Shown here: positions 2,217 to 56,419 of the stretch, piece after piece
How the letters are laid out: each line of letters opens with the position of its first letter
Position numbering within the stretch: position 1 is the stretch's first letter
Source: Macrostomum lignano
Lineage: Eukaryota
Direction of reading: 5' to 3'
Assembly (NCBI GenBank): GCA_002269645.1
Contig: NIVC01002607.1
Span: 11,967-75,966 of the forward strand
Length of the DNA: 64,000 nucleotides
Notes under the pieces: model-generated
What the model was told of the DNA's origin: nothing
What the model saw: only the letters and a program-made list of their open reading frames with translations
The model's database searches: none
Program-made: the position numbers and the translations under genes

Positions 2217-2264
2217 GATTTCCTGAAATCTTAGAGGCGCCGCGGAAATCCCGAATTGTAGATA

Positions 2265-3855: not shown

Positions 3856-3903
3856 TTTGAGGGCGGCAGGTGCGGAATTTTCCTCGACCCTCAGTTGCTT
3901 TTT

Positions 3904-3916
3904 ATCCTCGTCGCCA
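3904..3916 (-). other. Primer-binding site TGGCGACGAGGAT (probably tRNA-Ser GCU)
   Basis: Abuts the LTR end (CA) on the minus strand. It is complementary to ...ATCCTCGTCGCCA, which I recall as the 3' end of metazoan tRNA-Ser(GCU); not checked against a database. Confidence 0.75.
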
Positions 3917-4128
3917 TGTTTTGTTTGAAAAACGCCAAGTCAATGAATTAGGGTAGTTTGAAATTAAGCTATATTTTAGCAGCAGCGCGCTCCTAGGGTC
4001 TTGTGTTCCTAAATGAAGAGATTCGAAGCTTAGCAAACAAAGGAGAGTACTGTATCGCGTCGCATAAACCATAGACTATTTCCGAAGTAAAAGTCTATAC
4101 TTTGCAGTAGTCATAGCAATACGCAACA
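3917..4128 (-). mobile_element. 5' LTR (212 bp, TG...CA)
   Basis: TGTTTTG...GCAACA termini, adjacent PBS, second copy at 33982-34195 with 7 substitutions over the aligned ~209 bp. Confidence 0.93.
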
Positions 4129-4741
4129 CCAGCCTCCCAAATCCTCAGTTGCTGTGCCAGCCTCCCAAATCCTCAGTCGCTGGGACAGCCTCCCAGATCC
4201 TCAGTTGCTGTGCCAGCCTCCCAAATCCTCAGTCGCTGGGACAGCCTCCCAGATCCTCAGTGGCTGTGCCAGCCTCCCAAATCCTCAGTTGCTGGGCCAG
4301 TCTCCCAGATCCTCAGTTTTTGATTAGCCAGCCTCCCAGATCCTCAGTTGCTGTGCCAGCCTCCCAAATCCTCAGTTGCTGTGCCAGCCTCCCAGATCCT
4401 CAATTGCTGTGCCAGCCTCCCAAATCCTCGGTTGCTGGGCCAGCCTCCCAGATCCTCAGTTGCTGTGCCACCCTTCCAGATCCTCAGTTGCTGGGCCAGC
4501 CTCTCAAATCCTCAGTTGCTGGGCCAGTCTCCCAGATCCTCAGTTGTTGATTGGCGAGCCTCCCAGATTCTCATTTCCTGGGCCAGTCTCCCAGATCCTC
4601 AGTTGCTGTGCCAGCCTCCCAGATCCTCAGTTGCTGGGCCAGCCTCTCAAATCCTCAGTTGCTGGGCCAGTCTCCCAGATCCTCAGTTGTTGATTGGCGA
4701 GCCTCCCAGATTCTCATTTCCTGGGCCAGTCTCCCAGATCC
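4129..4741. repeat. ~28-bp minisatellite (CCTCCCAGATCCTCAGTTGCTGTGCCAG)
   Basis: Direct tandem array starting at the first base after the LTR; same family at 33690-33981. Confidence 0.9.
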
Positions 4742-4937
4742 TCTGTAGGTTTCTCATCCTATCGAAAAAGCAGTGCGTTATTTTAACCTTCAAAATTTGG
4801 CGTCTTTACCATAGAAAATTGCTGTTGGAAGAGCTTCGTGTTGATAAGCCAGTCATTCTTCAAAGCAGAAACGCTCTCAGAAGTATCAAAAGAACTCACA
4901 AGTACACGAGCCTATCTTTGAGCATCGCAAAGCAGAG

Positions 4938-5312
4938 ATGCTGAACTCAAAGCAGCCAAAGAATTCTGACACGATAAGCAGGAATAAAATCGTTGTTCGC
5001 GTCATTCACTGCGACGCCACGTACTCCAAAGCACTCAGTACCAATCTGCGCCGACTGATGCCGCTGCACCTGATTAACGATATCGATATGGATTATCAGC
5101 TGCTGTCAGCTTCTAATTTAGACTTCTTCTCCGTTGAGATTAAGCGCAGGAATGAATCGAAAATGGTATTTACCTTTGCTAAGAATACCGAGCCGCAGCA
5201 ATATCCTCTGATCAATATTTATAACAAAGTGGCTGGAGAATTGTGCGCCGAAATTTTAAAACAGATCAAAAATGCTCAAGAGGACAGGTTTATTGCGCAG
5301 CTATACTACTGA
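4938..5312 (+). other. Non-repetitive ORF of unknown nature (open from ~4848)
   Basis: About 155 stop-free codons of ordinary composition. No domain recognised; could be an exon or TE remnant. Confidence 0.2.
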
Positions 5313-5978
5313 CCTGACAACTGCAATGAGTAGTTGAACTTCTGGAAAGTAATTTGAAATATTCAGCACAAAATTGAACTGAATTATTGCAGTATGCGTT
5401 AAGAAATATAAAGCCAAATTTTGCATCACCACTTGCTGCCTAGCTGTCTTTAGGAGTCCTTCAAATTTTGATAGTGATGATTTCAAATTTGGGCTTTGAA
5501 GGTTGCTTCAACCCAACTATATGTACGAGGAAGTTAGCTTAAAGCCAACAACTTGGACATGGGGAATATAGCTAGTGGATTTTAGGGTGGGGATATTTTC
5601 ATGAGAATTGATTTTATAAGAATAAAACTATGATCCTATTAAAACTGCAACTGATTTATCAATCTAAGAAATTACAAAAGGATTACTTATTTCCTAATTT
5701 TTCACCGTGAAGCTTTGCTTCTGAAAAAAAGATTGTTTTTTTAAATAAACTATTCTTGGAAATTGCTTAAACTTATCGAATTCCCATTAGCAGCGCATAG
5801 GGGATTAACAAATGGAGGTTTGACCTCACCGCTGAAAGCATTTTTTGTATTTTTTTACTTTTTCGTCATTTTAGGCATCACCTTAAGCGTCTGGCAAAAG
5901 GTAAAAGGATCACCTCTGAAAGGTTTACTCAATCTCAACCCCAAAAGTTGGTACCAATTGTGACCCATGATCTATGAA

Positions 5979-6433
5979 ATTTGCTTGCCGAACTTTGCTT
6001 GCAGGAATTTGCTTGCCGAACTTTGCTTGCAGAACTTTGCTTGCAGGAATTTTGCTTGCAGAACTTTGCTTGCAGGAATTTGCTTGCAGAACTTTGCTTG
6101 CCGAACTTTGCTTGCCGAACTTTGCTTGTCGAACTTTGCTTGCCGAACTTTGCTTGCCGAACTTTGCTTGTCGAACTTTGCTTGCCGAACTTTGCTTGCC
6201 GAACTTTGCTTGCCGAACTTTGCTTGCCGAACTTTGCTTGCCGAACTTTGCTTGCCGAAATTTGCTTGCCGAACTTTGCTTGCCGAACTTTGCTTGCCGA
6301 ACTTTGCTTGCCTGCAAAATTCCTGCAAGCAAAATTCCTGCAAGCAAAGTTCGGCAAGCAAAGTTCCTGCAAGCAAAATTCCTGCAAGCAAAGTTCGGCA
6401 AGCAAATTTCCGCAAACAAAATTCCTTCAAGCA
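5979..6433. repeat. 14-15 bp satellite (CTTTGCTTGCCGAA / TTTTGCTTGCAGGAA) with strand inversion at ~6312
   Basis: Units read forward to ~6311, then as the reverse complement (GCAAGCAAAGTTCG, GCAAGCAAAATTCCT). Confidence 0.9.
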
Positions 6434-7587
6434 AACGTCGTACTCCCCTTCCCTCCTCCGCTCCATTCTCTCCAGTATTTCCTTTCTTTCTCCCCCTCAG
6501 GCCCGCAGTCATGCGTTAATCCATCTATCTGTTGTCTACCTGGTCCTTGAGGTAAAAATTTTGCCGACTCAATTGCTTACAGTGGGTCTCGCTGAGGCAA
6601 GGAGTACACTAGGGTGGATTGGCGGAACCTTCACAGTTGGGATCTGCACGACCCAGTTCCCAGAAGGGACACACAAATTTTGAGGTATAGCCCGAGCATA
6701 TACGAATACTCGTACAGCTTCTCTTGGAGGACTTGCAGCAAAATACACTGCCGAAATGGGAAGTTGCAGCTTCTGGGATTCTGAATTCGAACGAGTCATA
6801 CGCACAGGCACACACTCACAGGAGTGTACAGCGGCCTCAACTTTATTTATTGTTAGGCATGTACACTTTGCTGTGCCTTGGGGGTTGGCCCTCAAGCTGG
6901 GCGTTAATTGCACGAGCAGAGCCAAGCCGAGATTTAGCCTCAAATTAATGCCACTGCACTTTGAATGGAGTCTGGACCGCTGACACATCAGAGCGCCACG
7001 ACCAGAGCATGGATGACTAGGCTACGGCACCCCAGTAGCCAAATGTATACATGTGAATTTCGCACCCGGACTCCATCTTATCCGAAAATGGCTTGCAGCA
7101 AATTCCAACTTAATTTGTGCAAACTAAACTTAAATGTGTAACCTTAGCTCAAAATCGAAAAATCGTACAAACTTAGCTTCGGCTTAAACACTTAGTGAAA
7201 CTTTTTACCACAAACCAAATTTTGTTTTCAATCCGTAGTAACATGTACTTTTCAGTACAGATTCGCACAGTTCATTTCCATGACCCTTATAACAAGAATT
7301 TGTGCACTCTTAGCCATTCTTTAATACACAACTGAATTGCCGCAAATGCAAACTGTCTATGGCCAGAGCCCGCTGACTGAGATGTACAGTTGCGTCTGTG
7401 GCTGAACCCTCAAACCCTATTATATTGCTGATCCCGAGCCCAAATGCTCTCAGCATTTCTACTTTCGATAAGCTGAATTTGCACTTTTCACAAGACTCTA
7501 TCAGACAGCAACTAGGAGAAACAAGAAACCTTCCTTTCAAAGTTCAACAAAAATCTGCGTGGATCAGCTGATCGCTTCGACCTGAGC

Positions 7588-7669
7588 ATGTTCCGAACGG
7601 TTCTGCTTCTGTTCTGCATGAGCGCAGCCATCTACGGTGCTCTGAGCTGCCCGTCCTCAAAGAAGAAAT
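7588..7669 (+). CDS. WSC gene exon 1: signal peptide MFRTVLLLFCMSAAIYGALSCPSSKKK
   Basis: ATG at 7588, hydrophobic core, 82 nt (phase 1), donor GTGAGT at 7670, 88-nt intron to the acceptor at 7757. Confidence 0.8.
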
Positions 7670-10600
7670 GTGAGTAGCTTTTGTTGCCTTTGATTTGCGC
7701 TTTAGCTTGCTTGTGCTCATGCTCAGCTGCATTCAGGATAATCCTGCCACTTTTCAGCTGAGCCTGATGCAGCTCCGGAAACCAAGGAGGATCCGCCGAA
7801 AGACAGAAGCGATTGGCCTTCAGAAAATCAATTTCACCCTGGTCTGTGAACAGTCACCATCGAGTGACTTTGATAGCCTTTGATTTGCGCTTTAGCTTGC
7901 TTGTGCTCATGCTCAGCTGCATTCAGGATAATCCTGCCACTTTTCAGCTGAGCCTGATGCAACTCCGGAAACCAAGGAGGATCCGCCGAAAGACAGAAGC
8001 GATTGGCCTTCAGAAAATCAATTTCACCCTGGTCTGTAAACAGTCACCATCGAGTGACTTCTTGTCCTCCTGTCATGATTGATTCCACTTTAATAAATGC
8101 ATTTTTCTCATCTGTCAGCATGTCAAAAAGTACTCTCATCATATCAGAACAGTTCCCTCAGCATATTAACATGTCTATAATTCCCAAACAGTTTACAATT
8201 CCCTAGCTGTCTAAATTTCCCAAACTGTTTACAATTCCCCAGCTGTCTACAATTCCCTAGCTGTCTACAATTCCCCAGCTGTCTACAATTCTCCCAAATG
8301 TCTACAGTTCCCCAAATGTCTACAATTCCCAAAGCTGTCTACAATTCCCAAGCTGTCTTTAATTGCCCTGCTGTCTACAATTCCCCACCTCTCTACAGTT
8401 TCCCAGCTGTCTACAATTCTTAAAGCTGTTTACAATCCCCCATCTGTCTTTAATTGCCTTGCTGATTAAAATTCACCAGCTGTCTACAATTCCCCAACTG
8501 TCTACAATCCCCCCAACTTTCTACTGTTCCCCAATATGTGTACAAACATTCACTCCAAAATACTTTGCACTTTAGCTTGTGCTCATGCTCAGCTGCATTC
8601 AAGATATAACTGCCACTTTTCAGCTGGGACAAATGCAGCTCCGACTAGCCAGGACACTTCGAAAGTCAAAACCACTTTGGAAGATCCAGGTGAGACACCA
8701 GTTAGATTTTGAGTTGAATTACAAATTTCTTACTTCAGTAGAGTAACTTCACCCTGGTCTTTGATCTGTCATTATCAAATCACTTATCTTGCCTTTGTGT
8801 CATAAAAGATCCTGTAGTTTTAGCGAGATACGGATCATCTCCTGCGTCTACAATGCCCTGCTGTCTAAATTTCCCCAGCTGTGTACAATTCCCCCAGCTC
8901 TCTACAATTCCCCAGCTGTCTACGATTTCTCCAGATCTCTACAATTCCCCAGCTGTCAACGATTTCTCCAGCTCTCTACAATTCCCCAGCTGTCTACAAC
9001 TCCCCAGCTGTCTACAATTTTCCAGCTGTCTTCAAATGCCCCGCTGTCTTTAATTACTCTGCTGTCTACAATATCCCCAGCCGCGTCTTTAATTGCCATG
9101 CTCTCTACAATTTCCTACCTGTCTTTAATTACTCTGCTGTCTACAATTTCCCCAGCCGCGTCTTTAATTGCCATGCTCTCTACAATTTCCTACCTGTCTT
9201 TAATTGACCTGCTGTCTACAATTCCCCAGCAGTCTACAATTTCCCACCTGTCTACAATTCCCTAGCTGTCTACAATTTTCCAGCTGTCTACAATTTCCCA
9301 CCTGTCTACAATTCCCTAGCTGTCTACAATTTTCCAGCTGTCTACAATTCCCCAGCTGTCTTCTATTGCCTGCTGTCTACAATTTCCCAGCTGTCTGCAT
9401 TTCCCCAGCTGTCTAAAATTGCCCAGCTGTCTACAATTTCCCAGCTGTCTTTAATTGCCATCCTGTCTACAACTTCCCAGCTGTCTGCAATTCCCCAGCT
9501 GTCTACAATTTCCCAGCTGTCTTTAATTGCCTGCTGTCTACAATTTTTCAGCTGTCTTTAATTGACCTGCTGTCTACAATTTCCCAGCTGTCTTTAATTG
9601 CCATCCTGTCTACAATTTCCCAGCTGTCTGCAATTTCCCAGCTGTCTTTAATTGCCATCCTGTCTACAATTCCCCAGCTGTCTAAAATTCCCCAGCTGTC
9701 TACAATTTCCCAGCTGTCTTTAATTGCCATCCTGTCTACAATTTCCCAGCTGTCTGCAATTCCCCAGCTGTCTAAAATTCCCAAGCTGTCTAAAATTCCC
9801 CAGCTGTCTAAAATTCCCCAGCCGTCTTTAATTGCCCTGCTGTCTACATTTCTCCACTTGTCTTAAACTGCCCTGCTGTTTAAAATTCACCAGCTGTTTA
9901 CATTTCCTCAACTGTCTACTATCCCCCCAACTTTCTACTGTTCCCCAATATGTGTACAAACATTCACTCCAAAATACTTTGCACTTTAGCTTGTGCTCAT
10001 GCTCAGCTGCATTCAAGATATAACTGCCACTTTTCAGCTGGGACAAATGCAGCTCCGACTAGCCAGGACACTTCGAAAGTCAAAACCACTTTGGAAGATC
10101 CAGGTGAGACACCAGTTAGATTTTGAGTTGAATTACAAATTTCTTACTTCAGTAGAGTAACTTCACCCTGGTCTTTGATCTGTCATTATCAAATCACTTA
10201 TCTTGCCTTTGTGTCATAAAAGATCCTGTAGTTTTAGCGAGATACGGATCATCTCCTGCGTCTACAATGCCCTGCTGTCTAAATTTCCCCAGCTGTGTAC
10301 AATTCCCCCAGCTCTCTACAATTCCCCAGCTGTCTACGATTTCTCCAGATCTCTACAATTCCCCAGCTGTCTACGATTTCTCCAGCTCTCTACAATTCCC
10401 CAGCTGTCTACAACTCCCCAGCTGTCTACAATTTTCCAGCTGTCTTCAAATGCCCCGCTGTCTTTAATTACTCTGCTGTCTACAATATCCCCAGCCGCGT
10501 CTTTAATTGCCATGCTCTCTACAATTTCCTACCTGTCTTTAATTACTCTGCTGTCTACAATTTCCCAGCCGCGTCTTTAATTGCCATGCTCTCTACAATT

Positions 10601-13600
10601 TCCTACCTGTCTTTAATTGACCTGCTGTCTACAATTCCCCAGCAGTCTACAATTTCCCACCTGTCTACAATTCCCTAGCTGTCTACAATTTTCCAGCTGT
10701 CTACAATTTCCCACCTGTCTACAATTCCCTAGCTGTCTACAATTTTCCAGCTGTCTACAATTCCCCAGCTGTCTTCTATTGCCTGCTGTCTACAATTTCT
10801 TTGCTGTCTTTAATTGCCCTGCTGTCTACAATTCCCCACCTGTTTTTAATTGCTCTTCTGTCTACAATTTTCCAGCTGTTTACAATTCCCCAGCTGTCTA
10901 CGATTTCTCTAACTCTCTACAATTCCCCAGCTGTGTACAATTCCCCAGCTGTCTTTAATTGACCTGCTGTCTACAATTTCCCACCTGTCTACAATTCCCT
11001 AGCTGTCTACAATTTTCCAGCTGTCCACAATTTCCCACCTGTCTTTAATTGCCCTGCTGTCTACAAGTCCCCAGCTGTCTTTAATTGACCTGCTGTCTAC
11101 AATTTCCCACCTGTCTTTAATTGCCATCCTGTCTACAATTTCCCAGCTGTCTGCATTTCCCCAGCTGTCTAAAATTGCCCAGCTGTCTACAATTTCCCAG
11201 CTGTCTTTAATTGCCATCCTGTCTACAACTTCCCAGCTGTCTGCAATTCCCCAGCTGTCTACAATTTCCCAGCTGTCTTTAATTGCCTGCTGTCTACAAT
11301 TTTCCAGCTGTCTTTAATTGACCTGCTGTCTACAATTTCCCAGCTGTCTTTAATTGCCATCCTGTCTACAATTTCCCAGCTGTCTGCAATTTCCCAGCTG
11401 TCTTTAATTGCCATCCTGTCTACAATTCCCCAGCTGTCTAAAATTCCCCAGCTGTCTACAATTTCCCAGCTGTCTTTAATTGCCATCCTGTCTACAATTT
11501 CCCAGCTGTCTGCAATTCCCCAGCTGTCTAAAATTCCCAAGCTGTCTAAAATTCCCCAGCTGTCTAAAATTCCCCAGCCGTCTTTAATTGCCCTGCTGTC
11601 TACATTTCTCCACTTGTCTTAAACTGCCCTGCTGTTTAAAATTCACCAGCTGTTTACAATTCCTCAACTGTCTACAATCCCCCCAACTTTCTACTGTTCC
11701 CCAAATTGTGTACAAACATTCACTCCAAAATACTTTGCACTTTAGCTTGTGCTCATGCTCAGCTGCATTCAAGATATAACTGCCACTTTTCAGCTGGGAC
11801 AAATGCAGCTCCGACTAGCCAGGACACTTCGAAAGTCAAAACCACTTTGGAAGATCCAGGTGAGACACCAGTTAGATTTTGAGTTGAATTACAAATTTCT
11901 TACTTCAGTAGAGTAACTTCACCCTGGTCTTTGATCTGTCATTATCAAATCACTAATCTTGCCTTTGTGTCATAAAAGATCCTGTAGTTTTAGCGAGATA
12001 CGGATCATCTCCTGCGTCTACAATGCCCTGCTGTCTAAATTTCCCCAGCTGTGTACAATTCCTCCAGCTCTCTACAATTCCCCAGCTGTCTACGATTTCT
12101 CCAGATCTCTACAATTCCCCAGCTGTCTACGATTTCTCCAGCTCTCTACAATTCCCCAGCTGTCAACGATTTCTCCAGCTCTGTACAATTCCCCAGCTGT
12201 CTACAACTCCCCAGCTGTCTACAATTTTCCAGCTGTCTTCAAATGCTCTGCTGTCTTTAATTTCTTAGCTGTCTTTAATTACTCTGCTGTCTATAATTTC
12301 CCCAACCGCGTCTTTAATTGCCATGCTCTCTACAATTTCCTACCTGTCTACAATTCCCTAGCTGTCTACAATTTTCCAGCTGTCCACAATTTCCCAGCTG
12401 ACTTTAATTGCCATCCTGTCTACAACTTCCCAGCTGTCTGCAATTCCCCAGCTGTCTACAATTTCCCAGCTGTCTTTAATTCCCCAGCTGTCTACAATTT
12501 CCCATCTGTCTTTAATTGCCCTGCTGTCTACAATTTTCCAGCTGTCTTTAATTGCCATCCTGTCTACAATTTCCCAGCTGTCTTTAATTGCCATCCTGTC
12601 TACAATTCCCCAGTTTTCTAAAATTCCCCAGCTGTCTACAATTTCCCAGCTGTCTTTAATTGCCATCCTGTCTACAATTTCCCAGCTGTCTGCAATTCCC
12701 CAGCTGTCTAAAATTCCCCTGCTGTCTACATTTCCCAGCCGTCTTTAATTACCCTGCTGTCTACATTTCCCCAGCCGTCTTTAATTGCCCTGCTGTCTAC
12801 ATTTCCCCAGCCGTCTTTAATTGCCCTGCTGTCTACATTTCCCCAGCCGTCTTTAATTGCCCTGCTGTCTACATTTCCCCAGCCGTCTTTAATTGCCCTG
12901 CTGTCTACATTTCCCCAGCCCTCTTTAATTGCCCTGCTGTCTACATTTCCCCAGCCGTCTTTAATTGCCCTGCTGTCTACATTTCCCCAGCCGTCTTTAA
13001 TTGCCCAGCTGTCTACAATTCTCCACCTCTCTACAGTTTCCCAGCTGTCTACAATTATTAAAGCTGTTTACAATCCCCCATCTGTATTTAATTGCCTTGC
13101 TGTTTAAAATTCACCAGCTGTCTACAATTCCCCAACTGTCTACAATTTCCCAGCTGTCTGCAATTCCCCAGCTGTCTAAAATTTCCCAGCTGTCTAAAAT
13201 TCCCCAGCTGTCCAAAATTCCCCACCTGTCTTTAATTGCCCTGCTGTCTACATTTCCCCAGCCGTCTTTAATTGCCCTGCTGTCTACATTTCCCCAGCCG
13301 TCTTTAATTGCCCTGCTGTCTACATTTCCCCAGCCGTCTTTAATTGCCCAGCTGTCTAGAATTCTCCACCTCTCTACAGTTTCCCAGCTGTCTACAATTA
13401 TTAAAGCTGTTTACAATCCCCCATCTGTATTTAATTGCCTTGCTGTTTAAAATTCACCAGCTGTCTACAATTCCCCAACTGTCTACAATCCCCCCAACTT
13501 TCTACTGTTCCCCAATATGTGTACAAACATTCACTCCAAAATACTTTGCACTTTAGTTTGTGCTCATGCTCAGCTGCATTCAAGATATAACTGCCACTTT

Positions 13601-22600: not shown

Positions 22601-25600
22601 CACTTAAAATCACCCCAGCTTGATCAAACTTTCTCGAAAAATTTTATATTCTCAAATTTTCTATTATTCAGATACATACGAGCAGGGACCGTGGGTCACT
22701 CCAATTTTACCGGGTAAGTTTCCATCTGAATATTTCCGCTGTTTAAGCTGCTCTTACTTAAATTAATTAGTTTTAACCATTTCAGAAAACATATCGATGG
22801 CAGCCTGCGCTGTGAACATGATGATGGAAAATTCAGATGTGGTGTCTACTCGAAGAGGGATTCCATTTGAAACTTGCGCTCGAGGGTGTATCAATGTCGA
22901 TCTTTACGACAATTACAAATATTTTTTCATTCGCGACGATAAAGAATGCGTTTGTGCACCCGAGCTTCCAGAATACTCGGATATTTATCCGGACAGTGAC
23001 TGTAAAGGAAGGTGTCCTCGTATAAAAGGATCACTCGAATTTTGCGGAAATCAAGATTTTTTGGCATTTTTCAATCTTATTCGACAAAAACCAGGCAAGT
23101 ATTCGGTGACAGCTCCGGCTTTTACGATAAACATTTGCAGCTCCTTTTTAATCCTACATTCTAAAGCATGTACTCAACTTGCTAGTATCCATGCTAGTAT
23201 CGAGTAATTACAAACTCACTTCAACCTCCGCACCACTCAGACCAGTCCAAGTCGAATCTGCCAACTCCGGATCAGCAAAAACAAAGTGAGAGAACAGATT
23301 CAAAGTTTTAATTATGAATAATATTCTTCAGCTCAAAGTAAAAGTAATTATAACCACACTGCAACGTCCGCACCACGCAGGCCAGCCCGAATCGGTTCCG
23401 GCAACTCCGGATCCCAGAGCGCAGAGCGTCACACAAAATCCAAGTGAGAACTGCATGTCAGAACAGTTCCCTCAGCATGTCAGAACAGTTCCCTCAGCAT
23501 GTCAGAACAGTTCCCTCAGCATGTCAGAACAGTTCTCTCAGCATGTCAGAACAGTTCCCTCAGCATGTCAGAACAGTTCCCTCAGCATGTCAGAACAGTT
23601 CCCTCAGCATATCAGAACAGTTCCCTCAGCATGTCAGAACAGTTCCCTCAGCATGTCAGAATAATTCCCCCAGCATGTCAGAACAGTTCCCTCAGCATGT
23701 CAGAATAATTCCCCCAGCATGTCAGAACAGTTCCCTCAGCATGCCAGACTAATTCCCCCAGCATACCAGAACAGTTCCCTCAGCATGCCAGACTAATTCC
23801 CCCAGCATACCAGAACAGTTCCCTCAGCATGCCAGACTAATTCCCCCAGCATACCAGAACAGTTTCCTCAGCATGTCAGAACAGTTCCCCAGCATACCAG
23901 AATAATTCCCTCAGCATACCAGAACAGTTCCCTCAGCATGTAAGAAAAGCCCCTACTCCTATATTGATGTAATGCTTTTCATGAAACATTGGACCACTTT
24001 TCCCCAACGGTTGCAGGAGATCCCATAGGATGCTATTCAATATACCAAGGCTATCCGATGGCAAAGCTGGAACTAGTAAATAAAGAAAAAATGTCGCACC
24101 GCGTTTGCGCTTTCGAGTGTCGCAAGAAAAATGCCTTGAAGAAATTCAAATACTTCAGCCTCGCCTTCGGTGACAGCTGCCTGTGTGCATCGGAACTGCC
24201 CCACGACTCGTACAGGCTGAGTATCGAGAAAGATTGTTCGATCCGCTGCCCAGCAAGTCACATGGAGTCGTGCGGTGGAGAAAGTGGAGCGGCGTATTTC
24301 AGCCTGAGCACAATAACCAACTCGCCGAACTTTGGTAAGCTGTTGGCAAATTCGATTGGAAACTGAGACTGTTGAAGGCCACTTGCCAATTCTTGATCTT
24401 CTTGCAATTTACCTTACGATTTCAGATAAATTCGAGCAGGGAGCGAAGGTCTATCCGGTTATTCCAGGTGAGTTAAACTTGAAGCTTGTCAGTCGCATAA
24501 TCTGTCTCATTACAATTAACTATTATAATCTTATGCGGATCTCATCCGCATGCACTTGTGCTCACTTGTTATTCATTTTCATTTTTAGCTTCAGATTCTC
24601 TGAAATGCTACGAAAATCGTTATGAATTGACAAAGGTGTTGCAAAGCGATGATGAGATGTCACACCTTGTTTGCGCCTCCGAGTGTGTGAGGCGTGATCT
24701 CTACGGGAAAAAATTCAAATATTTCGCCATCGCTAACGGTGACCGCTGCTTTTGCGAATCGGAACTACCTCCGGCGAAGTATAAAAGAAAACTCAACGAA
24801 AAATGTTCATATCGATGTCCGCGAAATGACAAGCAGTCATGCGGTGGTCCCGGGGGAATTGTGTATTTTAAACTGGAAATCACGAATACTCCTCCGGAAT
24901 CAGGCAAGTGTTCGGTCACGTCACCGCCTGTGCATGAGCTGATGCTGACTTGAATTCAAACCAATTTGATTCTTTTCCGTTAAAAGCCGTTTGCCCATTC
25001 GCTAATTCTCAATCGATCAGCCCCAATTCACCGTATGCTCACCTGCCTAAAATTCTCCCAAACATCTACAATGCCCTCAGCCATCGATTCACCCAGCTCT
25101 CTTACAATTCTCACAGCTATCTGATATTCACCCAGCAGTATATAATCGCCCCAGCTGTCTACAGTTACTTAGCAATGAGGAAGTTTTGATCTCAGCTAAG
25201 AGCATCCAGCTTTTCTCCCTGGTTTCACTTCCATCTGACTTGAAAATCCGATCGAGCTGTTGTATAATGTTTTCTACTGAGTTCACCCATGACGTCACCT
25301 TTTCAGACAAAAAGAAGCAAGGAGCGAAGGTCTATCCAGCTATTCCTAGTGAGTTTACTATTTCCGTCTATTCTGATTCATCTTCTGTAGTTTAATATTT
25401 CTGCATGTTTTTATCAGCCACAACACTTGCTTGTGCACTTGTTTTTACCTGCAATGCATTTGATTTCAAATGTTTTAGATTCCTCATTTGAATGTTACAT
25501 CGATGAATATTTAGCTAAACCCAAACTAAAATCTGATAATATGTCGCACCTCATTTGCGCTACCGAGTGTGTGAGGCGTGATCTCTACGGCAGATTCAAA

Positions 25601-28600
25601 TATTTCGCCATCGCTAACGGTGACCGCTGCTTTTGCGAATCGGAACTACCTCCGGCGAAGTATAAAAGAAAACTCAACGAAAAATGTTCATATCGATGTC
25701 CGCGAAATGACAAGCAGTCATGCGGTGGTCCCGGGGGAATTGTGTATTTTAAACTGGAAATCACGAATACTCCTCCGGAATCAGGCAAGTGTTCGGTCAC
25801 GTCACCGCCTGTGCATGAGCTGATGCTGACTTGAATTCAAACCAATTTGATTCTTTTCCGTTAAAAGCCGTTTGCCCATTCGCTAATTCTCAATCGATCA
25901 GCCCCAATTCACCGTATGCTCACCTGCCTAAAATTCTCCCAAACATCTACAATGCCCTCAGCCATCGATTCACCCAGCTCTCTTACAATTCTCACAGCTA
26001 TCTGATATTCACCCAGCAGTATATAATCGCCCCAGCTGTCTACAGTTACTTAGCAATGAGGAAGTTTTGATCTCAGCTAAGAGCATCCAGCTTTTCTCCC
26101 TGGTTTCACTTCCATCTGACTTGAAAATCCGATCGAGCTGTTGTATAATGTTTTCTACTGAGTTCACCCATGACGTCACCTTTTCAGACAAAAAGAAGCA
26201 AGGAGCGAAGGTCTATCCAGCTATTCCTAGTGAGTTTACTATTTCCGTCTATTCTGATTCATCTTCTGTAGTTTAATATTTCTGCATGTTTTTATCAGCC
26301 ACAACACTTGCTTGTGCACTTGTTTTTACCTGCAATGCATTTGATTTCAAATGTTTTAGATTCCTCATTTGAATGTTACATCGATAAATATTTAGCTAAA
26401 CCCAAACTAAAATCTGATAATATGTCGCACCTTGTTTGCGCTACCGAGTGTGTGAGGCGTGATCTCTACGGCAGATTCAAATATTTCGCCATCGCTAACG
26501 GTGACCGCTGCTTTTGCGAATCGGAACTACCTCCGGCGAAGTATAAAAGAAAACTCAACGAAAAATGTTCATATCGATGTCCGCGAAATGACAAGCAGTC
26601 ATGCGGTGGTCCCGGGGGAATTGTGTATTTTAAACTGGAAATCACGAATACTCCTCCGGAATCAGGCAAGTGTTCGGTCACGTCACCGCCTGTGCATGAG
26701 CTGATGCTGACTTGAATTCAAACCAATTTGATTCTTTTCCGTTAAAAGCCATTTGCCCATTCGCTAATTCTCAATCGATCAGCCCCAATTCACCGTATGC
26801 TCACCTGCCTAAAATTCTCCCAAACATCTACAATGCCCTCAGCCATCGATTCACCCAGCTCTCTTACAATTCTCACAGCTATCTGATATTCACCCAGCAG
26901 TATATAATCGCCCCAGCTGTCTACAGTTACTTAGCAATGAGGAAGTTTTGATCTCAGCTAAGAGCATCCAGCTTTTCTCCCTGGTTTCACTTCCATCTGA
27001 CTTGAAAATCCGATCGAGCTGTTGTATAATGTTTTCTACTGAGTTCACCCATGACGTCACCTTTTCAGACAAAAAGAAGCAAGGAGCGAAGGTCTATCCA
27101 GCTATTCCTAGTGAGTTTACTATTTCCGTCTATTCTGATTCATCTTCTGTAGTTTAATATTTCTGCATGTTTTTATCAGCCACAACACTTGCTTGTGCAC
27201 TTGTTTTTACCTGCAATGCATTTGATTTCAAATGTTTTAGATTCCTCATTTGAATGTTACATCGATGAATATTTAGCTAAACCCAAACTAAAATCTGATA
27301 ATATGTCGCACCTCATTTGCGCTACCGAGTGTGTGAGGCGTGATCTCTACGGCAGATTCAAATATTTCGCCATCGCTAACGGTGACCGCTGCTTTTGCGA
27401 ATCGGAACTACCTCCGGCGAAGTATAAAAGAAAACTCAACGAAAAATGTTCATATCGATGTCCGCGAAATGACAAGCAGTCATGCGGTGGTCCCGGGGGA
27501 ATTGTGTATTTTAAACTGGAAATCACGAATACTCCTCCGGAATCAGGCAAGTGTTCGGTCACGTCACCGCCTGTGCATGAGCTGATGCTGACTTGAATTC
27601 AAACCAATTTGATTCTTTTCCGTTAAAAGCCGTTTGCCCATTCGCTAATTCTCAATCGATCAGCCCCAATTCACCGTATGCTCACCTGCCTAAAATTCTC
27701 CCAAGCATCTACAATGCCCTCAGCCATCGATTCACCCAGCTCTCCTAAGATATTCACCCAGCTATCTGATATTCACCCAGCAGTATAAAACTGCCCCAGC
27801 TGTCTACAGTTACTATGCAATGAGGATGTTTAGTCTTAGTCAGAACTGCTAAGAGCATCCAGCTTTTCTCCCTGGTCACGTCACCGCCTGTGCATGAGCT
27901 GGTGCTGACTTGAATGCAAACAAACCAATTCGATTCTTTTCCGTTAAGCCGTTTGCCAGTTCTCAATCGATCAGCCCCGATTCGCCCATCATTCCATTAA
28001 ACTTTGCACTTTAACTTGTGCTCATGCTCAGCTGCATTAATTATTTAACTGCCACTTTTCAGCTGAGTCTACTGCAGCTCCGACTAGCCAGGAGACTCAA
28101 AAAGGCAAAGGCGCTTCGGAAGATCCAGGTTGGACACCAGTCAGATTTTGAGTTGAATTACAAATTTCTTACTTCAGTAAAGCAACTTCACCCTGGTCTG
28201 TAATCTGTCACTATCGAATCCCTTATCTTGCCTTTCTGAGTGATCCTGCAGTTTTAGCGAGATCCGCATCATCTCCTGCGGCATTATCCCATGTCATTGT
28301 GCAACAATTCAATTCAAATTTACATACTGCAGGTCGGATTATCAACACATTTCAAACACCGTCCGGAGCCAATACGGCGCTACGTAGTACGGAAAAAAGC
28401 AGCACTTCAGAATCTCTAGCTTATTTTTAGATTAGCGATTATCCCTGCCTTCTGTTAGCCTTGATGAGCATTTCGACATTGAGCTGTCTACAATTTCCCT
28501 GCTGTCTACAATTCCCCAGCTGTCTACAATTCCCCAGCTGTCTACATTCCCCAGCTGTCTTTAATTGCCCTGCTGTCTACAATTCCCTCAATTGTCTAAA

Positions 28601-30982
28601 ATTCCCTAGCTGTCTACAATTCCCAAGCTGTCTAAAATTCCCCAACTGTCTTTAATTGCCCAGCTGTCTACAATTCCCCCAGTTGTCTAAAATTCCGTAG
28701 CTGTCTACAACTCCCCCAACTGTTTACAATTCCCCAACTGTCTATCATGCCCTCCAGCTGTCTACAATTCCCCAATATGAGGTCAAACGTTCACTCCATA
28801 AAAATTTGCACTTTAGCTTGTGCTCATGCTCAGCTGCATTCTTATATAACTGCCACTTTTCAGCTGGGACCACTACAGCTCCTGCAACCCAGAAGGACCT
28901 GAAAGGCAACAGCGCTTCGGAAGATTCAGGTGAGATTCCAGATCGGAAGTTGAATTACAAATTTCTTACTTCAGTAGAGTAACTTCACCCTGTCATGCGA
29001 TTCTCTTAGTTACTTCTAAGAAATGCCAAGTGCCACTGGATTTTCTCCTTGATTTCTCCTTGTCCACTGACCTGAAAATATTTTACGTATTTTCGAGAGG
29101 ACGTAAAATTAAAGATTGATTTTGCATTTTAGATGAAAAGAAGCAGGGAGCGAAGGTCTATCCAGCTATTTCGGGTGAGTTTGAGTTTGAGTGAGTTTGA
29201 GTTTCTATAAACCAAAAACGCTGACTTGTGCTCTTGTTCTCACCTGCTGTGAATTCAATTTTAACTGTTTTAGATTCTTCACCTGCATGCTACTTCTTTT
29301 ATGAGAGCGATTATCGGAATGATCATCCAGTACTAAAATCTAATAAGATGTCACACCTTATTTGCGCTACCGAGTGTGTGAGGCGTAATGTCAACGACAG
29401 GTACAAATATTTCGCCATCACTAACGGTAGCCGCTGCTACTGTAGATCGGAACTACCTCCAGCGATTTATAAATCTGGTGGCAAAAACTCGGATGTTTGT
29501 GGGCATCGATGTCAACAAAATTACAAGCAACCATGCGGTAGCCCAATAGGAATCGTGTATTCAAATCTGACCACATCAAATACTCCTCCTATAACAGGCA
29601 AGTGTGGCTCAGCCATCTTCCATTCACCCAGCTCTCTACGATATTCGCACACTGTTTGACATTCACCCAACAGTATAAAATTACCCCAACTGCTGGAGAT
29701 GTTTTGGTCTTGGTCAGAACTGCCAAGAGCTTCCAGCTTTTCTCCCTGATTTCATTTCCACCTGACCTGAAAATCTGTTTGAGCTGATGTGAAATGTTCT
29801 CTTCTAGAGTGCACCCACATATTTGTCCTTACAGATAAATACGAGCAGGGAGCGAAGGTCTATCCAGTTATTCCGGGTGAGTTCACTATTTGAGTTCACT
29901 CTGATTCCTCTTGTGCAGTTTAATATTTCTGCTGGTTTCTGTTACCAAAAACGCTTGCTTGTGCACTTGTTCTCACCTGCCATTCAACTAATTTCAACTG
30001 TTTTAGACTCTCCAGTTGGATGCTACCCGTACGATAATTCTATTTTTTTTCTACTTAAATCTAAATGGATGTCACACCTCATTTGCGCTACCGAGTGTGT
30101 GAAGCGTGATCTCTACGGCAGATTCAAATATTTCGCCATCACTAACGGTGACCGCTGCTTTTGTGAATCGGAACTACCTCCGGCGAGCGAAAAGATTTCC
30201 GTCAACGAACATTGTTCATATCGATGTCTACGAAATTTCAAGCAAATATGCGGTAGCGGTACGGGAATTGTGTATTTTAAGCTGGAAACCACGAATACTC
30301 CTCATAAATCAGGCAAGTGTTCGGTCACATCACCGCCTGTGCATGATCTGGTGCTGACTTGAATGCAATCCAATTTGATTCTTTTCCGTTAAAAGCCGTT
30401 TGCAATTCACGTAACAGTCTGAAATAACCTGACAGTAAGTTCAATACAGAAAAAAAGGTCAATTTGGAAAGGCTTGTACTGCCGAGTATTGCTGAATTCT
30501 GAACAAATCTACGGATTCTATGCAAGTTTTTGTTTGTCCGTTGATATGCAGGAAAAACTAAAGCGAGATCTGTCAGAGTCCAAGATTCGGAGAGATTTGG
30601 AGGGATTGTTTAAGATTTTAAGGAAACTGTAAGCTTAAGTGAATAAAAAATCAAAATCAAAATAAATAAATATTGCTCAGCTGTCTACAATTCCCTGGCT
30701 ATCTACAATTCCCTGGCTATCTACAATTCCCCAGCTGTCTACAATTCCCCAGCTGTCTACAATTCCCCAGCTGTCTACAATTCCCCAATCTGTGTGCAGA
30801 TATGCACTCCGCATTCCCTTGATGTCTGCACCCATTCCTCAACTGACTGTAAACATCCAGTTACCCTTTATGACAAATTTCAGACAACTGACACGGCTGC
30901 TCCGAGGCCAGTGGAGCGGTCCGGTGCTGCACAGAATCCGGCAGGTGACCCAAAGCGAACTGACAGCGTCTCGGCTCTTTGA
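7588..30982 (+). CDS. Multi-exon gene for a probably secreted tandem WSC-domain protein (10 WSC domains plus S/T/P/A-rich linkers; roughly 1500 aa if all exons are included)
   Basis: Signal-peptide exon followed by more than 30 exons, each with an AG acceptor, GT or GC donor, length divisible by 3 and an open phase-1 frame. WSC pattern (G)CY...C...C...YF....G..C.C...C...C.G...CG. No transmembrane exon found; the terminal exon is tentative. Confidence 0.85.
7758..8031 (+). CDS. Two 84-nt linker exons (7758-7841, 7948-8031; EPDAAPETKEDPPKDRSDWPSENQFHP) in a 190-bp tandem duplication
   Basis: Acceptor CCACTTTTCAG, open phase 1-1; donor GTCTGT is weak, so the 3' boundary is uncertain. Confidence 0.55.
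8170..19800. repeat. Intronic 18-19 bp minisatellite (CTGTCTACAATTCCCCAG) with higher-order repeats (2484-bp duplication; 673/1811-bp sub-spacing)
   Basis: Hundreds of unit variants between the 66-nt exon modules. Exon spacings 11794 to 14278, 13605 to 16089 and 14278 to 16762 are all 2484 bp. Confidence 0.92.
8624..19968 (+). CDS. Ten 66-nt linker exons (GTNAAPTSQDTSKVKTTLEDP-like) at 8624, 10038, 11794, 13605, 14278, 16089, 16762, 18008, 19100, 19903
   Basis: Each is CACTTTTCAG|66 nt|GTGAGA, phase 1-1 and stop-free. Diverged copies (19903, 28063, 28864) keep the exact 66-nt length. Confidence 0.75.
20364..20696 (+). CDS. WSC exon W1 (type A, GT donor)
   Basis: TTTTCAG|333 nt|GTAATT; GIGCY...MSHRVCALEC...YFGLANGDNCLC...CSYRCPGNHLQSCGG. 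Confidence 0.92.
20783..29876 (+). CDS. Eight 42-nt spacer exons (KFEQGAKVYPVIP-like) at 20783, 22672, 24426, 25307, 26188, 27069, 29133, 29835
   Basis: Each is YAG|42 nt|GTGAGT or GTAAGT, phase 1-1, placed 72-275 nt upstream of a WSC exon. Confidence 0.88.
21100..21402 (+). CDS. WSC exon W2 (type B, GC donor)
   Basis: CTTCAG|303 nt|GCAAGA; ECYDN...VCASECVRR...CFC...CSYRCPGNHNQSCGG. Confidence 0.88.
21505..22465. repeat. CTGTCTACAATTCCCCAG-family minisatellite (also 28480-28780, 30675-30790)
   Basis: Same unit as 8170-19800. Confidence 0.9.
22786..23094 (+). CDS. WSC exon W3 (divergent, GC donor)
   Basis: CATTTCAG|309 nt|GCAAGT; FETCARGC...YKYFFI...ECVCAPELP...CKGRCP...FCG. Confidence 0.85.
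23455..23945. repeat. 22-bp minisatellite (CAGAACAGTTCCCTCAGCATGT)
   Basis: Tandem array; short relics at ~8143, ~20060 and ~31790. Confidence 0.9.
24017..24334 (+). CDS. WSC exon W4 (type A, GT donor)
   Basis: TTGCAG|318 nt|GTAAGC; PIGCY...MSHRVCAFEC...CLCASELP...CSIRCP...SCGG. Confidence 0.92.
24595..24903 (+). CDS. WSC exon W5 (type B, GC donor, mosaic)
   Basis: CTTCAG|309 nt|GCAAGT. Confidence 0.9.
25479..25784 (+). CDS. WSC exon W6 (881-bp tandem unit)
   Basis: TTTTAG|306 nt|GCAAGT. Confidence 0.9.
26360..26665 (+). CDS. WSC exon W7 (881-bp tandem unit)
   Basis: TTTTAG|306 nt|GCAAGT; differs from W6 and W8 by E to K and I to V. Confidence 0.88.
27241..27546 (+). CDS. WSC exon W8 (881-bp tandem unit)
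   Basis: TTTTAG|306 nt|GCAAGT. Confidence 0.88.
28063..28929 (+). CDS. Two diverged 66-nt linker exons (28063-28128 ESTAAPTSQETQKGKGASEDP; 28864-28929 GTTTAPATQKDLKGNSASEDS)
   Basis: CACTTTTCAG acceptors, donors GTTGGA and GTGAGA, exact 66 nt, stop-free. Confidence 0.72.
29274..29597 (+). CDS. WSC exon W9 (GC donor)
   Basis: TTTTAG|324 nt|GCAAGT; PACY...ICATECVRR...CYC...CGHRCQQ...CGS. Confidence 0.88.
30007..30312 (+). CDS. WSC exon W10 (GC donor)
   Basis: TTTTAG|306 nt|GCAAGT; VGCY...ICATECVKR...CFC...CSYRCLR...CGS. Confidence 0.9.
30861..30982 (+). CDS. Candidate terminal exon of the WSC gene (TLYDKFQTTDTAAPRPVERSGAAQNPAGDPKRTDSVSAL*)
   Basis: CTGAC...CATCCAG acceptor in phase 1, TAAP motif like the linker exons, stop at 30980-30982, AATAAA at ~31405. 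It could instead be an 84-nt internal exon ending at 30944 (GTGACC). Confidence 0.4.
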
Positions 30983-32084
30983 TTTTCTAGCAAACATTTT
31001 CAATGGAATTTAGCTCAGTGTGATTACTGTAGGATTCATTTTCATACTGTAGGCACGTGCTTTTAAGCATGATGCATTGGAATTTAGCTCAGTGTATGAT
31101 TACTGTAGGATTCATTTCATACTGTAGGCATGTGCTTTTAAGCATGATGCATTTTGTAAGCCAGCCAGCATTTCAGTTCCTTGCCTGTAGCTATAGGGAA
31201 TAGGTTCCAAGCAGTGGCATTATTCTTATCAAATGTGATATATTGTAGCTCAGCCAATCGCTCTTTTCAGTTGAACTCAAATTTCAAGCTAACAAGTACG
31301 AGCGTATGTACATGTCCTTGAGTTCTTTTTCTTACGTAGCTCAGTAGCTCTGTCTGCTTGCAAAAGGTACTTTATTTGTATTTCAATGCGCATAGTCAAA
31401 ACCAATAAAATCTGCGTGCTCATTCACCAGCTTCTCCCTAAGTAATCTCTGTGTTTCTCTTAATAAGAAACTCAAACATAAAGCAAGAACTATATTGGGA
31501 ATTTTTAGGGAATTAATAGCAAAAACTGAGACTGATAATACTGAAGAATTATTTGAATTAAGCAGAGTGTCAAAATACTAGGTAAAAAGGTACACTTGTA
31601 TTCAATTTGTAATCTGCTTGAAATAGAATGATCATTGCATTGAATTCAGTGGGGTTGCAGCCTACTGGTAAACCTGTTGTTGAGACGTTACCGTAAGCAG
31701 AATCGCTAAAGAGTCATTGCTAAAAAAACTCACTAATGAATTTAGCGACTCTGTGTCTAAAATAGAAACGTCGCTAAAAGTCCCTCAGTTCCCTCAGCAT
31801 GTCAGAACACTTCCCTCAGCATGTAAGAACAGTTCATAGTGGTGTTCCTAGTGGTCCTTCTCTCCAATTTTTACTTTTCTATTGTTCTCGGTTCTCCCCA
31901 ATTATCCCCGATTCCCATTTCCTTTGTTCTCGACCCGAACCCCATTGTTCTCAATGTTTGCTTGCGCGACACTTTCTCGACCCTCCGCTGTGCTCATTAT
32001 CCTCCCACCCCACCTCCGGATTGCGCAATTTTCCCATTTCTCATGTTGCAATGGCATTCTTATGTTTCTCATCATGACTTATTC

Positions 32085-32163
32085 TGACGTCATTTCTCCG
32101 GCAGCCAATCAGAGAGAGGGAGTCATGGAAACGACCTTGGAGCGGCTGGGAAGGCTATTTAAG
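32085..32163 (+). promoter_or_regulatory. Promoter-like cluster: TGACGTCA, CCAAT, TATTTAAG
   Basis: CRE palindrome 32085, GCCAATCAG 32104, TATA-like 32156, in canonical order; the associated transcript is unknown. Confidence 0.3.
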
Positions 32164-32462
32164 GAAGCGTTTTTCGGCGTGACAACCCTTAAAAGTCTTC
32201 GTCTCTCTTCTCGTCCTTCTTTGGACTTGCTGTCAGACATTGATCTGACCCATTCGTCTATAAGACGAATCATTTCCGTCCGCGGTCTGATACCGCCAAG
32301 TTCCCTCAGATCCCTAAGTGAGCTCGTCTGCCGGCCAGCGGTCTGATACCGCCCAGCACCTTCAGCATCGCCTGAACTACATCAGCGCCTCGTCGCTTCA
32401 GCGCATCGCCGCTTCACTACCTGCCTGTCTGCAGCCAACAGCCGCCCACGGTCACTCCGTCG

Positions 32463-32468
<6 letters not shown>

Positions 32469-32546
<78 letters not shown>
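32469..32546. repeat. (CT)n microsatellite
   Basis: Pure CT run. Confidence 0.97.
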
Positions 32547-32550
<4 letters not shown>

Positions 32551-33689
32551 AGCTGCCAGTAAGTTCCTGTACTGATTTGTGCTCTAATTGCCTTTACTTA
32601 TCCGGGGTTTGCTTATTTCCCATTGCTTGATTAGAGAGCTGAGCCAATTGTGATACCGTATCTTTGCTGTATTTTACTCGATAGTGAAGCCGCCTGATTG
32701 CCTGTTTATTTTGCCTAGAGGGCCTAATTATTAACCATTACTAAAATCCTCATTATTCGCACTTTCACCGTCATTTCATTCATGGCTTGCTAAGCCTTTC
32801 TCCCTGGGTGGCAAAGCATAAGGAAGTTTGGGTAAGCTAATGGCCTCTCCCCGTGCAAAGAGAGGTCTGGTAGTGAGATCCAGGTGCGCCAGGTCACATA
32901 GAGTGGTGGCAGCCACTCGGTCATGCTATGAGCGAGTGACCAACTATTGCACCTTGGCTACAGGTAGGGTCCATGTGGGTCCTTGGCCCTCTGGTCACGA
33001 AAGCGCTACCAAAGCTATCAATCATGTGGGCGGGACAGTCTGGTGCTGGAGGTTCGTCAGGTCATTGCCCGGTCATAGGCAGCCTACGGTCATTGTCCCC
33101 TATGGTCATACGTTTGCCTCCAAGCGGAGCGGACGGGCACCAAGGTCTTGGCTGCTAGGGCTGGTCCTTGTTAATTCATTCCATCAATATAATCGTGCCG
33201 CTATCGCTATAAATGACTACTTTTAGTTTCAAGCACAGATATTAGATTAACTAGATGCGCCACTCAGCACATTTGCGTGTAAGCTACTGTCAGTTCAGTA
33301 GGAAGTTAAAGAGAAGCATTTTAATGTATTTTTAAAGCCAAGGCTCATTTATTGGCTCTTAGCCCCAGCTTAGATCCTGCAACTGCATTCCATTGCAAGA
33401 GCAAAATTATAGCTATATTTAAAATATTTATATACTTAAAACGCTTTTATCTATAATACAAGCTTAAAATTGGGTTATCTCTATATGCTGTTTTGTTTAT
33501 CTAATTAAATTAATATTCAGATACTGAGTATCTGATTGGTCAAGCACATTCTAGAAGTCTTTTTGCAACCAAAGGTTTGAAAAATCATTATTTGCAGTAC
33601 TTACTTGCATCACTTTGGATAACCACACATAGTCGGGAATGAGAATATAACATGCTAATACAGATTATTAATATAATTAGTAGATAACA

Positions 33690-33981
33690 GTAGATCCTCA
33701 GTTGCTGGGCCAGCCTCCCAGATCCTCAGTTGTTGATTGACCAGCCTCCCAGATCCTCAGTTGCTGGGCCAGCCTCCCAGATCCTCAGTTGTTGATTGAC
33801 CAGCCTCCCAGATACCCATTTGTTGATTAGCCAGCCTCCCAGATCCTCAGTTGTTGGTTGGCCAGCCTCCCAAATCCTCAGTTCCTGGGCCAGCCTCCCA
33901 AATCCTCAGTCGCTGGGCCAGCCTCCCAGATCCATAGTTGCTGAGCCAGCCTGCCAGATCCTCAGTTGCTGTGCCAGCCTT
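33690..33981. repeat. ~28-bp minisatellite, same family and orientation as 4129-4741
   Basis: CCTCCCAGATCCTCAGTTGCTGGGCCAG units ending at the LTR. Confidence 0.9.
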
Positions 33982-34560
33982 TGAAATTTGTTTGAAAAAC
34001 GCCAAGTCAATGAATTAGGGTAGTTTGAAACTAAGCTATATTTTAGCGGCAGCGCGCTCCTAGGGTCTTGTGTTCCTAAATGAAAAGATTCGAAGCTTAG
34101 CAAACAAAGGAGAGTACTGTATCGCGTCGCATAAACCATAGACTATTTTTGAAGTAAAATTCTATACTTTGCAGTAGTCATAGCAACACGCAACACCCCC
34201 ACCGATGCTTATACAGTGCAGTTCAAAGTTACGCCTCAAGCAATTCAGTAATAAGTCAATCGTTCCGGACGTCGCCTGACTCGCGTGCTCCTACGGAACT
34301 CGAGCACACCCTGTTCCTTGTGCCTAGGCGACTGCATTGCATGGCGCATTGGACTTGTGGTAGCACTGACTTGGCACGTAGTTGCATCAGTATCACGAGG
34401 GGTGATCCCAGACTGCTTCGAATCATCAATCGGTAGTTCCTCTGTACGAGCAGTAGCATCGGACTGGTGCACTAATCGTCCTTCTGCGTCTCGGAAAGTA
34501 TTTGTACCAACTGTAGACTTCAGCTCAGACGGGCCATGCATGATCTTCAGGATTATAGTA
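33982..34560 (-). mobile_element. Truncated 3' end of the same Gypsy family: 3' LTR (33982-34195), polypurine tract, integrase C-terminus
   Basis: LTR ~97% identical to 3917-4128. Minus-strand GGTGGGGG lies immediately before TGTTG. The ORF ends FRRSTRVRRRPERLTYY* (34245), a typical Gypsy integrase tail. Confidence 0.9.
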
Positions 34561-34830
34561 AGGGTCATAGCAGCGGGTCGATTAATAAAAAATGAAATCA
34601 ATAAAACAAAATTAATTGCAATAACAGTTGTTTGGAAAAATTCTCATTTAAATCGTCACTGGCCAGCTACTTCAAAAAGTTTTTTGAGCTGAGTGAGAGT
34701 TTATTTCTTGGTTATCTTCACAATTTTTCTACCAAAATGTGAATTAATTATTGACAGTTTTTAAAAAAAATGAGTACACATCTATTATCAAGTTCCGTTA
34801 TCTCGCTATCTCAAAGTACAACTGCAGTGT

Positions 34831-56270: not shown

Positions 56271-56419
56271 TCAGTTATTCTCTGAGAGCCTTGACGTCTC
56301 AGTTTTTCTCCCCAGCACAGCATTATAGTTGCATTTAATTTTTACATGAACCCTTCATGTCTGACATGACGTTTCTTTTATTCTACCGTGACGCTTCTTA
56401 ATTTTTTAAATGACACTTT

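Follow-up and report, generated by a model that had tools for sequence, protein, structure and literature searches.

Two retrotransposon pieces around a WSC-domain gene of Macrostomum lignano are the swapped halves of one element

Overview of the locus

We analyzed a 64,000-nucleotide stretch of DNA from the flatworm Macrostomum lignano, hereafter the window, in which a gene with WSC domains lies between two directly repeated long terminal repeats (LTRs), with a Sushi/CCP-repeat gene to its right. Read on the + strand, the order is a left flank, a (1-367), the 5′ four-fifths of a retroelement (368-4128), a minisatellite array (M), the WSC interval, a second array of the same minisatellite (M′), the 3′ fifth of a retroelement (33982-34533) and a right flank, z. 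This order bears on how the WSC gene came to lie where it does, and we argue below that both pieces derive from the same element. The window is packed with minisatellites. All results are drawn from a single assembly, and the genome has a very high repeat content.

A Ty3/Gypsy element with outward-facing LTRs

Comparison of the window with itself by blastn returned, besides the satellite arrays, a single long-range pair, namely, 3920-4130 against 33987-34197, with 96.7% identity over 211 bp. When TG..CA ends are applied, the pair corresponds to direct LTRs of 212 bp (3917-4128) and 214 bp (33982-34195). The two copies differ by seven substitutions and by a changed outer tip in the right copy (TGAAAT versus TGT), and the longest perfectly identical run between them is 63 nt. 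A preliminary description of this stretch had placed direct LTRs of about 97% identity around the WSC gene, as is indeed the case, with ten WSC-domain exons (20351-30389) between them. Neither further LTR copies nor internal fragments of the element were found elsewhere in the window, and a scan of metagenome contigs with a conserved 33-mer of the LTR gave no match.

The element lies on the minus strand, and its LTRs face outwards, with the primer-binding site (PBS) to the left of the first LTR and the polypurine tract (PPT) to the right of the second. Its parts are as follows.

368-3904, minus strand: left piece, with a gag-like region carrying a zinc knuckle, protease, reverse transcriptase, RNase H and integrase (zinc-binding and core domains); stops abruptly at 368-370
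368-370, minus strand: junction triplet CCC (GGG on the + strand), copy 1; the left piece follows the intact GGGT-CCC-GTCT sequence through CCC and then diverges
3905-3916, minus strand: PBS TGGCGACGAGGA, abutting the left (5′) LTR, read from 3916 to 3905 in the sequence
3917-4128, minus strand: 5′ LTR, 212 bp, TG..CA ends
33982-34195, minus strand: 3′ LTR, 214 bp, outer U5 tip altered
34196-34208, minus strand: PPT GCATCGGTGGGGG, abutting the right LTR, read from 34208 to 34196
34248-34533, minus strand: right piece, an integrase C-terminal tail whose open frame ends ...RRSTRVRRRPERLTYY followed by a stop codon; homologous to proteins P0002 and P0003
34531-34533, minus strand: junction triplet CCC, copy 2; the right piece follows the intact sequence from CCC, in the same codon phase as copy 1

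Pfam matches run along the minus strand from 3587 to 316 in the order zf-CCHC, protease, reverse transcriptase, RNase H and integrase, which is that of Ty3/Gypsy. With its direct LTRs, the placement of its PBS and PPT and this order of domains, the element is a Ty3/Gypsy LTR retrotransposon (Metaviridae). No tRNA gene matching the primer of the PBS was identified, the window holding no tRNA gene. The left piece has frame breaks near 3478-3587, 2216-2265 and 1149-1290, as well as an in-frame stop near 987, and these several breaks show that this copy of the element is dead.

The two pieces are complementary

On the right piece, an open frame of 95 codons precedes the PPT on the minus strand. 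It has no Pfam match, and the word-indexed protein search found no homologue of it. An exhaustive HMMER search with this tail found one relative, P0002, plus its cluster mate P0003, both from short Logan contigs. P0002 also carries the integrase core, and it was the only protein returned when the word-indexed search was run with the integrase. A further reference point is L001, a Logan contig from SRR31628394, whose positions 1-1090 hold a related and apparently intact Ty3/Gypsy junction running from the integrase through the tail and PPT to the LTR, with 73% DNA identity to the window element. The PPT and the LTR start in the window are the same as those of the L001 element at 20 of 20 bases.

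The relatives place the two pieces end to end. Residues 1-147 of P0002 match the left piece from 810 to 370 with 74% identity, and residues 149-238 match the right piece from 34529 to 34251 with 50% identity (E about 4e-11). Similarly, residues 1-205 of P0003 match the left piece from 984 to 370 and residues 207-296 match the right piece from 34529 to 34251, again with 50% identity. In both of these intact relatives, the match to the left piece ends at 370, and the match to the right piece starts at 34529 with the next codon but one. At the DNA level, L001 aligns with the left piece from 1112 to 382 with 72.7% identity, and a three-way alignment at the break that includes L001 (about 100 bp compared) gives the intact sequence as ...CGGGT CCC GTCTGAG.... 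When the two pieces are joined, the frame continues as ...EQRVPSELKSTVG..., colinear with ...QERVKSHVQSAVG... in P0002, and the longer joined translation ...EQRVPSELKSTVGTNTFRD... is colinear with ...QERVKSHVQSAVGSNTFRD... of P0002 without a gap. The pieces do not overlap anywhere, and no base is lost at the cut. The window is free of Ns, both junctions included.

On the right side, homology to the element ends at 34529-34533, with none above 34533. The preliminary description had put a truncation at about 34.6 kb, next to the 3′ end of a lev-9-like gene, and both parts of that statement agree with our data, the Sushi/CCP repeats being in line with the label. It had also assumed a complete element on the left, with its 3′ LTR just upstream, and a second, truncated copy on the right. 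This part is not supported, since the left piece itself ends at 368-370, and what precedes it contains no tail, PPT or LTR.

1-367, no strand assigned: left flank a, non-element DNA, 40% GC, with one internal 29-bp repeat

Stop codons occur in all minus-strand frames of flank a. Its similarity to the integrase tail, the PPT, the LTR, the right flank and the rest of the window is at chance level only, and no copy of it was found elsewhere in the window, including 34534-64000. We considered whether a diverged tail or 3′ LTR might be hidden in 1-367. One DNA alignment looked colinear, and 14 nt match the LTR exactly, but shuffled sequence scores as high as either, and tblastn with both tails gave E > 1; both candidates were rejected.

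Because the break is complementary, the frame is continuous across it, nothing is lost and positions 1-367 are free of tail, PPT and LTR, the two LTR-bearing pieces are the halves of a single element that was cut once, in the C-terminal part of its integrase gene, with its orientation kept and the order of the halves swapped, rather than two copies. The chance that two truncations of an approximately 4.3-kb element would coincide within a few bases and in the same frame is roughly 1 in 1000. The annotation is thereby corrected, in that the apparent two copies of the element around the gene represent one.

The halves abut one minisatellite, split at the insertion site

At its outer end, each LTR borders an array of the same minisatellite.

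4129-4743, + strand: minisatellite M, 22 units of 28 bp (some of 31 bp), starting CCAGCCTCCC
33692-33981, + strand: minisatellite M′, 9.6 units of the 28-bp family of M, ending ...GCTGTG CCAGCCT T

These are the only two arrays of the 28-bp minisatellite in the window, with 27 matches against 0 expected by chance. The end of the right array (...GCTGTG CCAGCCT(T)) and the start of the left array (CCAGCCTCCC) rejoin in phase with a 7-nt overlap. A rare variant of the unit, GTCGCTGGG, is common to M′ and the first units of M, beside the junction. The preliminary description had proposed one minisatellite split at both LTRs, starting with CCAGCCT on one side and ending with CCAGCCT(T) on the other, and the arrays bear this out. 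The flanks of the LTRs overlap by the 7 nt CCAGCCT and have one extra T, and the U5 tip of the right LTR is altered, so a clean target-site duplication of 4 to 6 bp is not readable.

Two other interpretations of the arrays were rejected. The minisatellite does not belong to the LTR, because the array lies outside both LTRs, which is impossible for a direct LTR structure. We also asked whether the minisatellite flanks could be the termini of a host transposon, but 30400-33691 and 4744-8171 share no repeats in either orientation except for a 36-bp stretch of intron minisatellite.

One element was thus inserted once, in the minus orientation, into a 28-bp minisatellite. The alternative that two elements of the same family inserted independently into two arrays of a dispersed minisatellite, each being truncated later, is effectively refuted. 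Taken alone, in-phase flanks would be only moderately improbable under it (about 0.1 to 0.2 for an overlap of 4 to 8 nt), and the unreadable target-site duplication leaves it some room, but fragments that are complementary to within 0 to 3 nt, have a frame in common and do not overlap are not what two separate events would leave. The preliminary description had likewise called two independent insertions less parsimonious, in keeping with truncations that coincide within 0 to 3 nt in the same frame.

The interval between the LTRs

4744-33691, + strand: interval W, 29 kb, with an 18-bp minisatellite and ten WSC-domain exons

The ten WSC-domain exons lie on the + strand and were located by tblastn and by their match to the Pfam WSC domain; their coordinates are those of exons and not of the ends of the gene. 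The closest protein is P0001, a WSC fragment of Macrostomum lignano with 78% identity, which was the sole return of the word-indexed search for the WSC exons. There is a single set of exons and no second WSC copy in the window. Exact-protein look-ups of four open reading frames (ORFs) of the window and of P0001 gave no match.

Part of the gene consists of a tandem array (24549-27623) of an 881-bp unit with one WSC-domain exon. Three copies occupy 25427-27593; with the exon of one copy as query, their exon translations are 97.8 to 99.3% identical to it. Next to them, at 24549-24950, lies a more diverged copy with 77% identity. The array looks like a very recent expansion within the gene.

Upstream of the WSC exons, the 18-bp minisatellite GTCTACAATTCCCCAGCT forms an 11.6-kb array (8172-19787) with higher-order repeats of about 2.5 kb. 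The same minisatellite recurs in introns of the WSC gene, at 21506-22460, 28482-28774 and 30678-30787. We rejected the idea that the array is a coding repeat: all three + frames of the unit are open, yet the array has no long ORF and is non-coding. Farther to the left, at 5976-6435, a 14-bp tandem array is directly followed by its reverse-complement array, forming a long imperfect palindrome.

The block is circularly permuted

The insertion must originally have had the order M′, 3′ fifth, 5′ four-fifths, M. The in-phase arrays and the complementary halves of the element bear out the claim of the preliminary description that both flanks derive from a single insertion site, whose two sides are now permuted. 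Because the halves are complementary to the codon and the LTR flanks rejoin in phase, the block 368-34533 (34,166 bp) is a one-unit circular permutation of [M′ - element - M + WSC gene], with a unit of 34,163 bp. Closing the block on itself restores an uninterrupted element and links its minisatellite flanks through the WSC interval. The split element and the split insertion site together constitute an internal, base-precise proof of this permutation of a gene-bearing block.

Two junctions are novel, 367|368 and 34533|34534, and both fall at the same point of the element. The block has the marks expected of a circular intermediate, in that its order is permuted with ends that are adjacent in the deduced source and the junctions overlap by CCC only, with no loss of bases. 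The second junction joins the block to the Sushi/CCP-repeat gene.

34534-45875, minus strand: right flank z, with the 3′ end and exons of the Sushi/CCP-repeat gene

The last coding exon of this gene is at 34834-35031, its stop codon at 34831-34833 and an AATAAA signal at 34700-34705, 167 bp from the end of the element homology.

We favor, at about an even chance, an explanation in which the unit was once closed, as a circle or head to tail, was opened inside the element and was reinserted at the Sushi-gene site. The unit would first have existed in closed form with the element intact, either as an extrachromosomal circle or as head-to-tail repeats. A circle might have closed through recombination between tandem WSC paralogues or between minisatellite arrays, or else through end-joining. 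A single double-strand break in the C-terminal region of the integrase would then have opened the closed unit, and the opened unit would have been end-joined, with an overlap of 0 to 3 nt, into an intergenic site 167 bp past the poly(A) signal of the Sushi gene. Under this explanation, the pair of CCC triplets would be explained by staggered ends at the opening of the circle or by microhomology that arose by chance. We put forward more tentatively the specific version in which a 34-kb extrachromosomal circle, carrying a complete multi-WSC-domain gene together with its resident retrotransposon, was integrated back into the germline genome of a Macrostomum-like flatworm.

Several points weigh against this explanation. 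The tail of the element was recognized through one family of relatives at 50% identity, its assignment being supported by the conserved PPT/LTR boundary and the continuity of the frame. The CCC is derived from the element, as judged by the frame; if it arose as a duplication at a staggered break, this would imply that DNA was inserted into the element, a point slightly in favor of a large tandem duplication. The donor locus, the empty a|z site, the circle and a second copy would all lie beyond the window, and the evidence comes from a single assembly of a repeat-laden genome.

A tandem segmental duplication with [element + WSC gene] as its unit had been suggested in the preliminary description. 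What stands of this suggestion is the closed unit, tandem or circular, that most scenarios imply. In its plain form, the duplication fails because it makes one new junction, whereas the window shows two junctions and one unit. Nor does the window contain overlapping copies of a unit, as a tandem duplication would leave: the two pieces cover separate parts of the element, the WSC exons occur as one set and flank a has no second copy. A duplication is rescued only by supposing that a Sushi-gene segment entered the element first and that duplication of a unit of 64 kb or more followed.

This larger duplication is unlikely in our judgment, but it deserves to be set out. A Sushi-gene segment of at least 30 kb would have been inserted in the integrase tail with duplication of a CCC target, and tandem duplication of the whole [M′ - tail half - Sushi segment - 5′ half - M - WSC], 64 kb or more in length, would have come afterwards; the window would then run from the end of the inserted segment in copy 1 to its start in copy 2. 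The CCC at both junctions is as expected if the element was the insertion target, the locus is prone to tandem duplication (the 881-bp WSC exon unit and the 2.5-kb repeats in the 18-bp array), and M. lignano possesses the WSC paralogue P0001, at 78% identity. Nevertheless, two large and rare events are needed, and the critical evidence lies entirely beyond the window, from which the duplicated material is absent. As flank a does not recur in 34534-64000, the inserted segment would have to exceed 29.8 kb.

The circularly permuted unit of our preferred explanation could also be mimicked without duplication or circle by a local reshuffle with three breaks, one at each outer end and one inside the element, after which the two fragments released from an ancestral a - [X-M′-tail half][5′ half-M-Y] - z were religated in swapped order with their orientation kept. 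This scheme accounts for both junctions, the clean cut and the single-copy content from the window alone. Several considerations make it quite improbable all the same. Under this scheme a third junction is expected somewhere within 4744-33691, with 4744-8129 and 31835-33691 as the likeliest places, and none was recognized there. Two families of intron minisatellites span 8129-31835, suggesting one continuous piece. Moreover, swapped order with both orientations kept is one of eight possible outcomes.

A very unlikely explanation is that the arrangement was created by the assembly, a real tandem array of a 34-kb unit with intact elements having been collapsed to a circular unitig, linearized inside the element and pasted between contigs. 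An arbitrary cut of a circular unitig does yield exactly complementary ends, and the region is extremely rich in repeats. Against this, there are no Ns or gaps at either junction, and a 3-bp overlap with seamless joins to unique DNA is atypical of assemblers and scaffolders.

Comparison with known rearrangements

The arrangement in the window resembles a tandem segmental duplication by unequal crossing-over in that the right flank of the insertion lies upstream of its left flank with the gene between them. Unequal crossing-over, however, predicts two elements of which at least one is complete, together with a single new junction, whereas here there are complementary halves, two junctions and one unit. 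The clean single cut and the short duplication of the element's own bases are reminiscent of a nested insertion that splits an LTR retrotransposon; in such insertions the halves keep their order around the insert, while those in the window are swapped around the element's own flanks.

In yeast, genes flanked by LTRs can form circles, such as the GAP1 circle formed between two Ty LTRs. As at GAP1, a cellular gene lies here between two direct LTRs that are able to recombine and so excise or amplify it. Unlike at GAP1, both LTRs come from a single element and point outwards, the PBS and PPT lying beyond the interval, and the arrangement looks more like what a circle would leave behind than like its precursor. 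With 212-bp direct LTRs and direct minisatellite arrays on either side, the WSC gene might be excised again, as the preliminary description had also noted for the LTRs; as a reasonable generic expectation, recombination between the LTRs or the minisatellite arrays could release it as a 30,065-bp circle.

To our knowledge, few germline rearrangements via circular DNA have been documented, mostly in mammals, and the usual basis for inferring them is a comparison between copy and donor. If our preferred explanation is correct, the window would record the relocation or duplication of a gene via a circular intermediate in an invertebrate, with the split retroelement marking the opening point of the circle to the base. 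Translocation via a circular intermediate has been described for the cattle color-sidedness alleles Cs29 and Cs6 (Durkin et al. 2012, Nature 482:81, as cited in PMC12235870), and human segmental duplications with a reversal of order from A-B to B-A have been reported as well (Chicote et al. 2020, PMC7450558). The signature given for circular intermediates is reversed block order with microhomology at the junctions (PMC7450558; Durkin et al. 2012, as cited in PMC12235870). Like the cattle and human cases, the block in the window is circularly permuted, its ends were adjacent in the original and its junctions show 0 to 3 nt of overlap without homology. Unlike in those cases, the original order was deduced here from an internal marker, a split retroelement in a split minisatellite, and not from a donor locus. 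The block is also small (34 kb) and from a flatworm, and it may have been either copied or cut from its donor.

Other features of the right flank

In the Sushi/CCP-repeat gene (35076-49527), nearly all introns are filled with minisatellites that differ from one intron to the next, the periods being 53, 28, 48, 37, 30, 21, 19/75, 36, 55/166, 21 and 22 bp. A 28/30-bp family occurs twice among them, at 36432-36779 and 39878-40895. Beyond the gene, at 50558-51609, lies a 1,052-bp element resembling a foldback element or a miniature inverted-repeat transposable element; its two 295-bp arms are 99% complementary and 462 bp apart, and the same short ORF is present on both strands. An interstitial telomere-like (CCCTAA) repeat of about 10.7 copies is found at 55469-55530, within otherwise unique DNA and just left of a 23-bp satellite; the repeat may be the trace of a former chromosome end or of a fusion. 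The satellite itself, AT-rich with the unit TGACGCTTCTATGATTTTTTACA, occupies 56389-64000 in more than 337 copies with 93% identity and runs past the right edge of the window.

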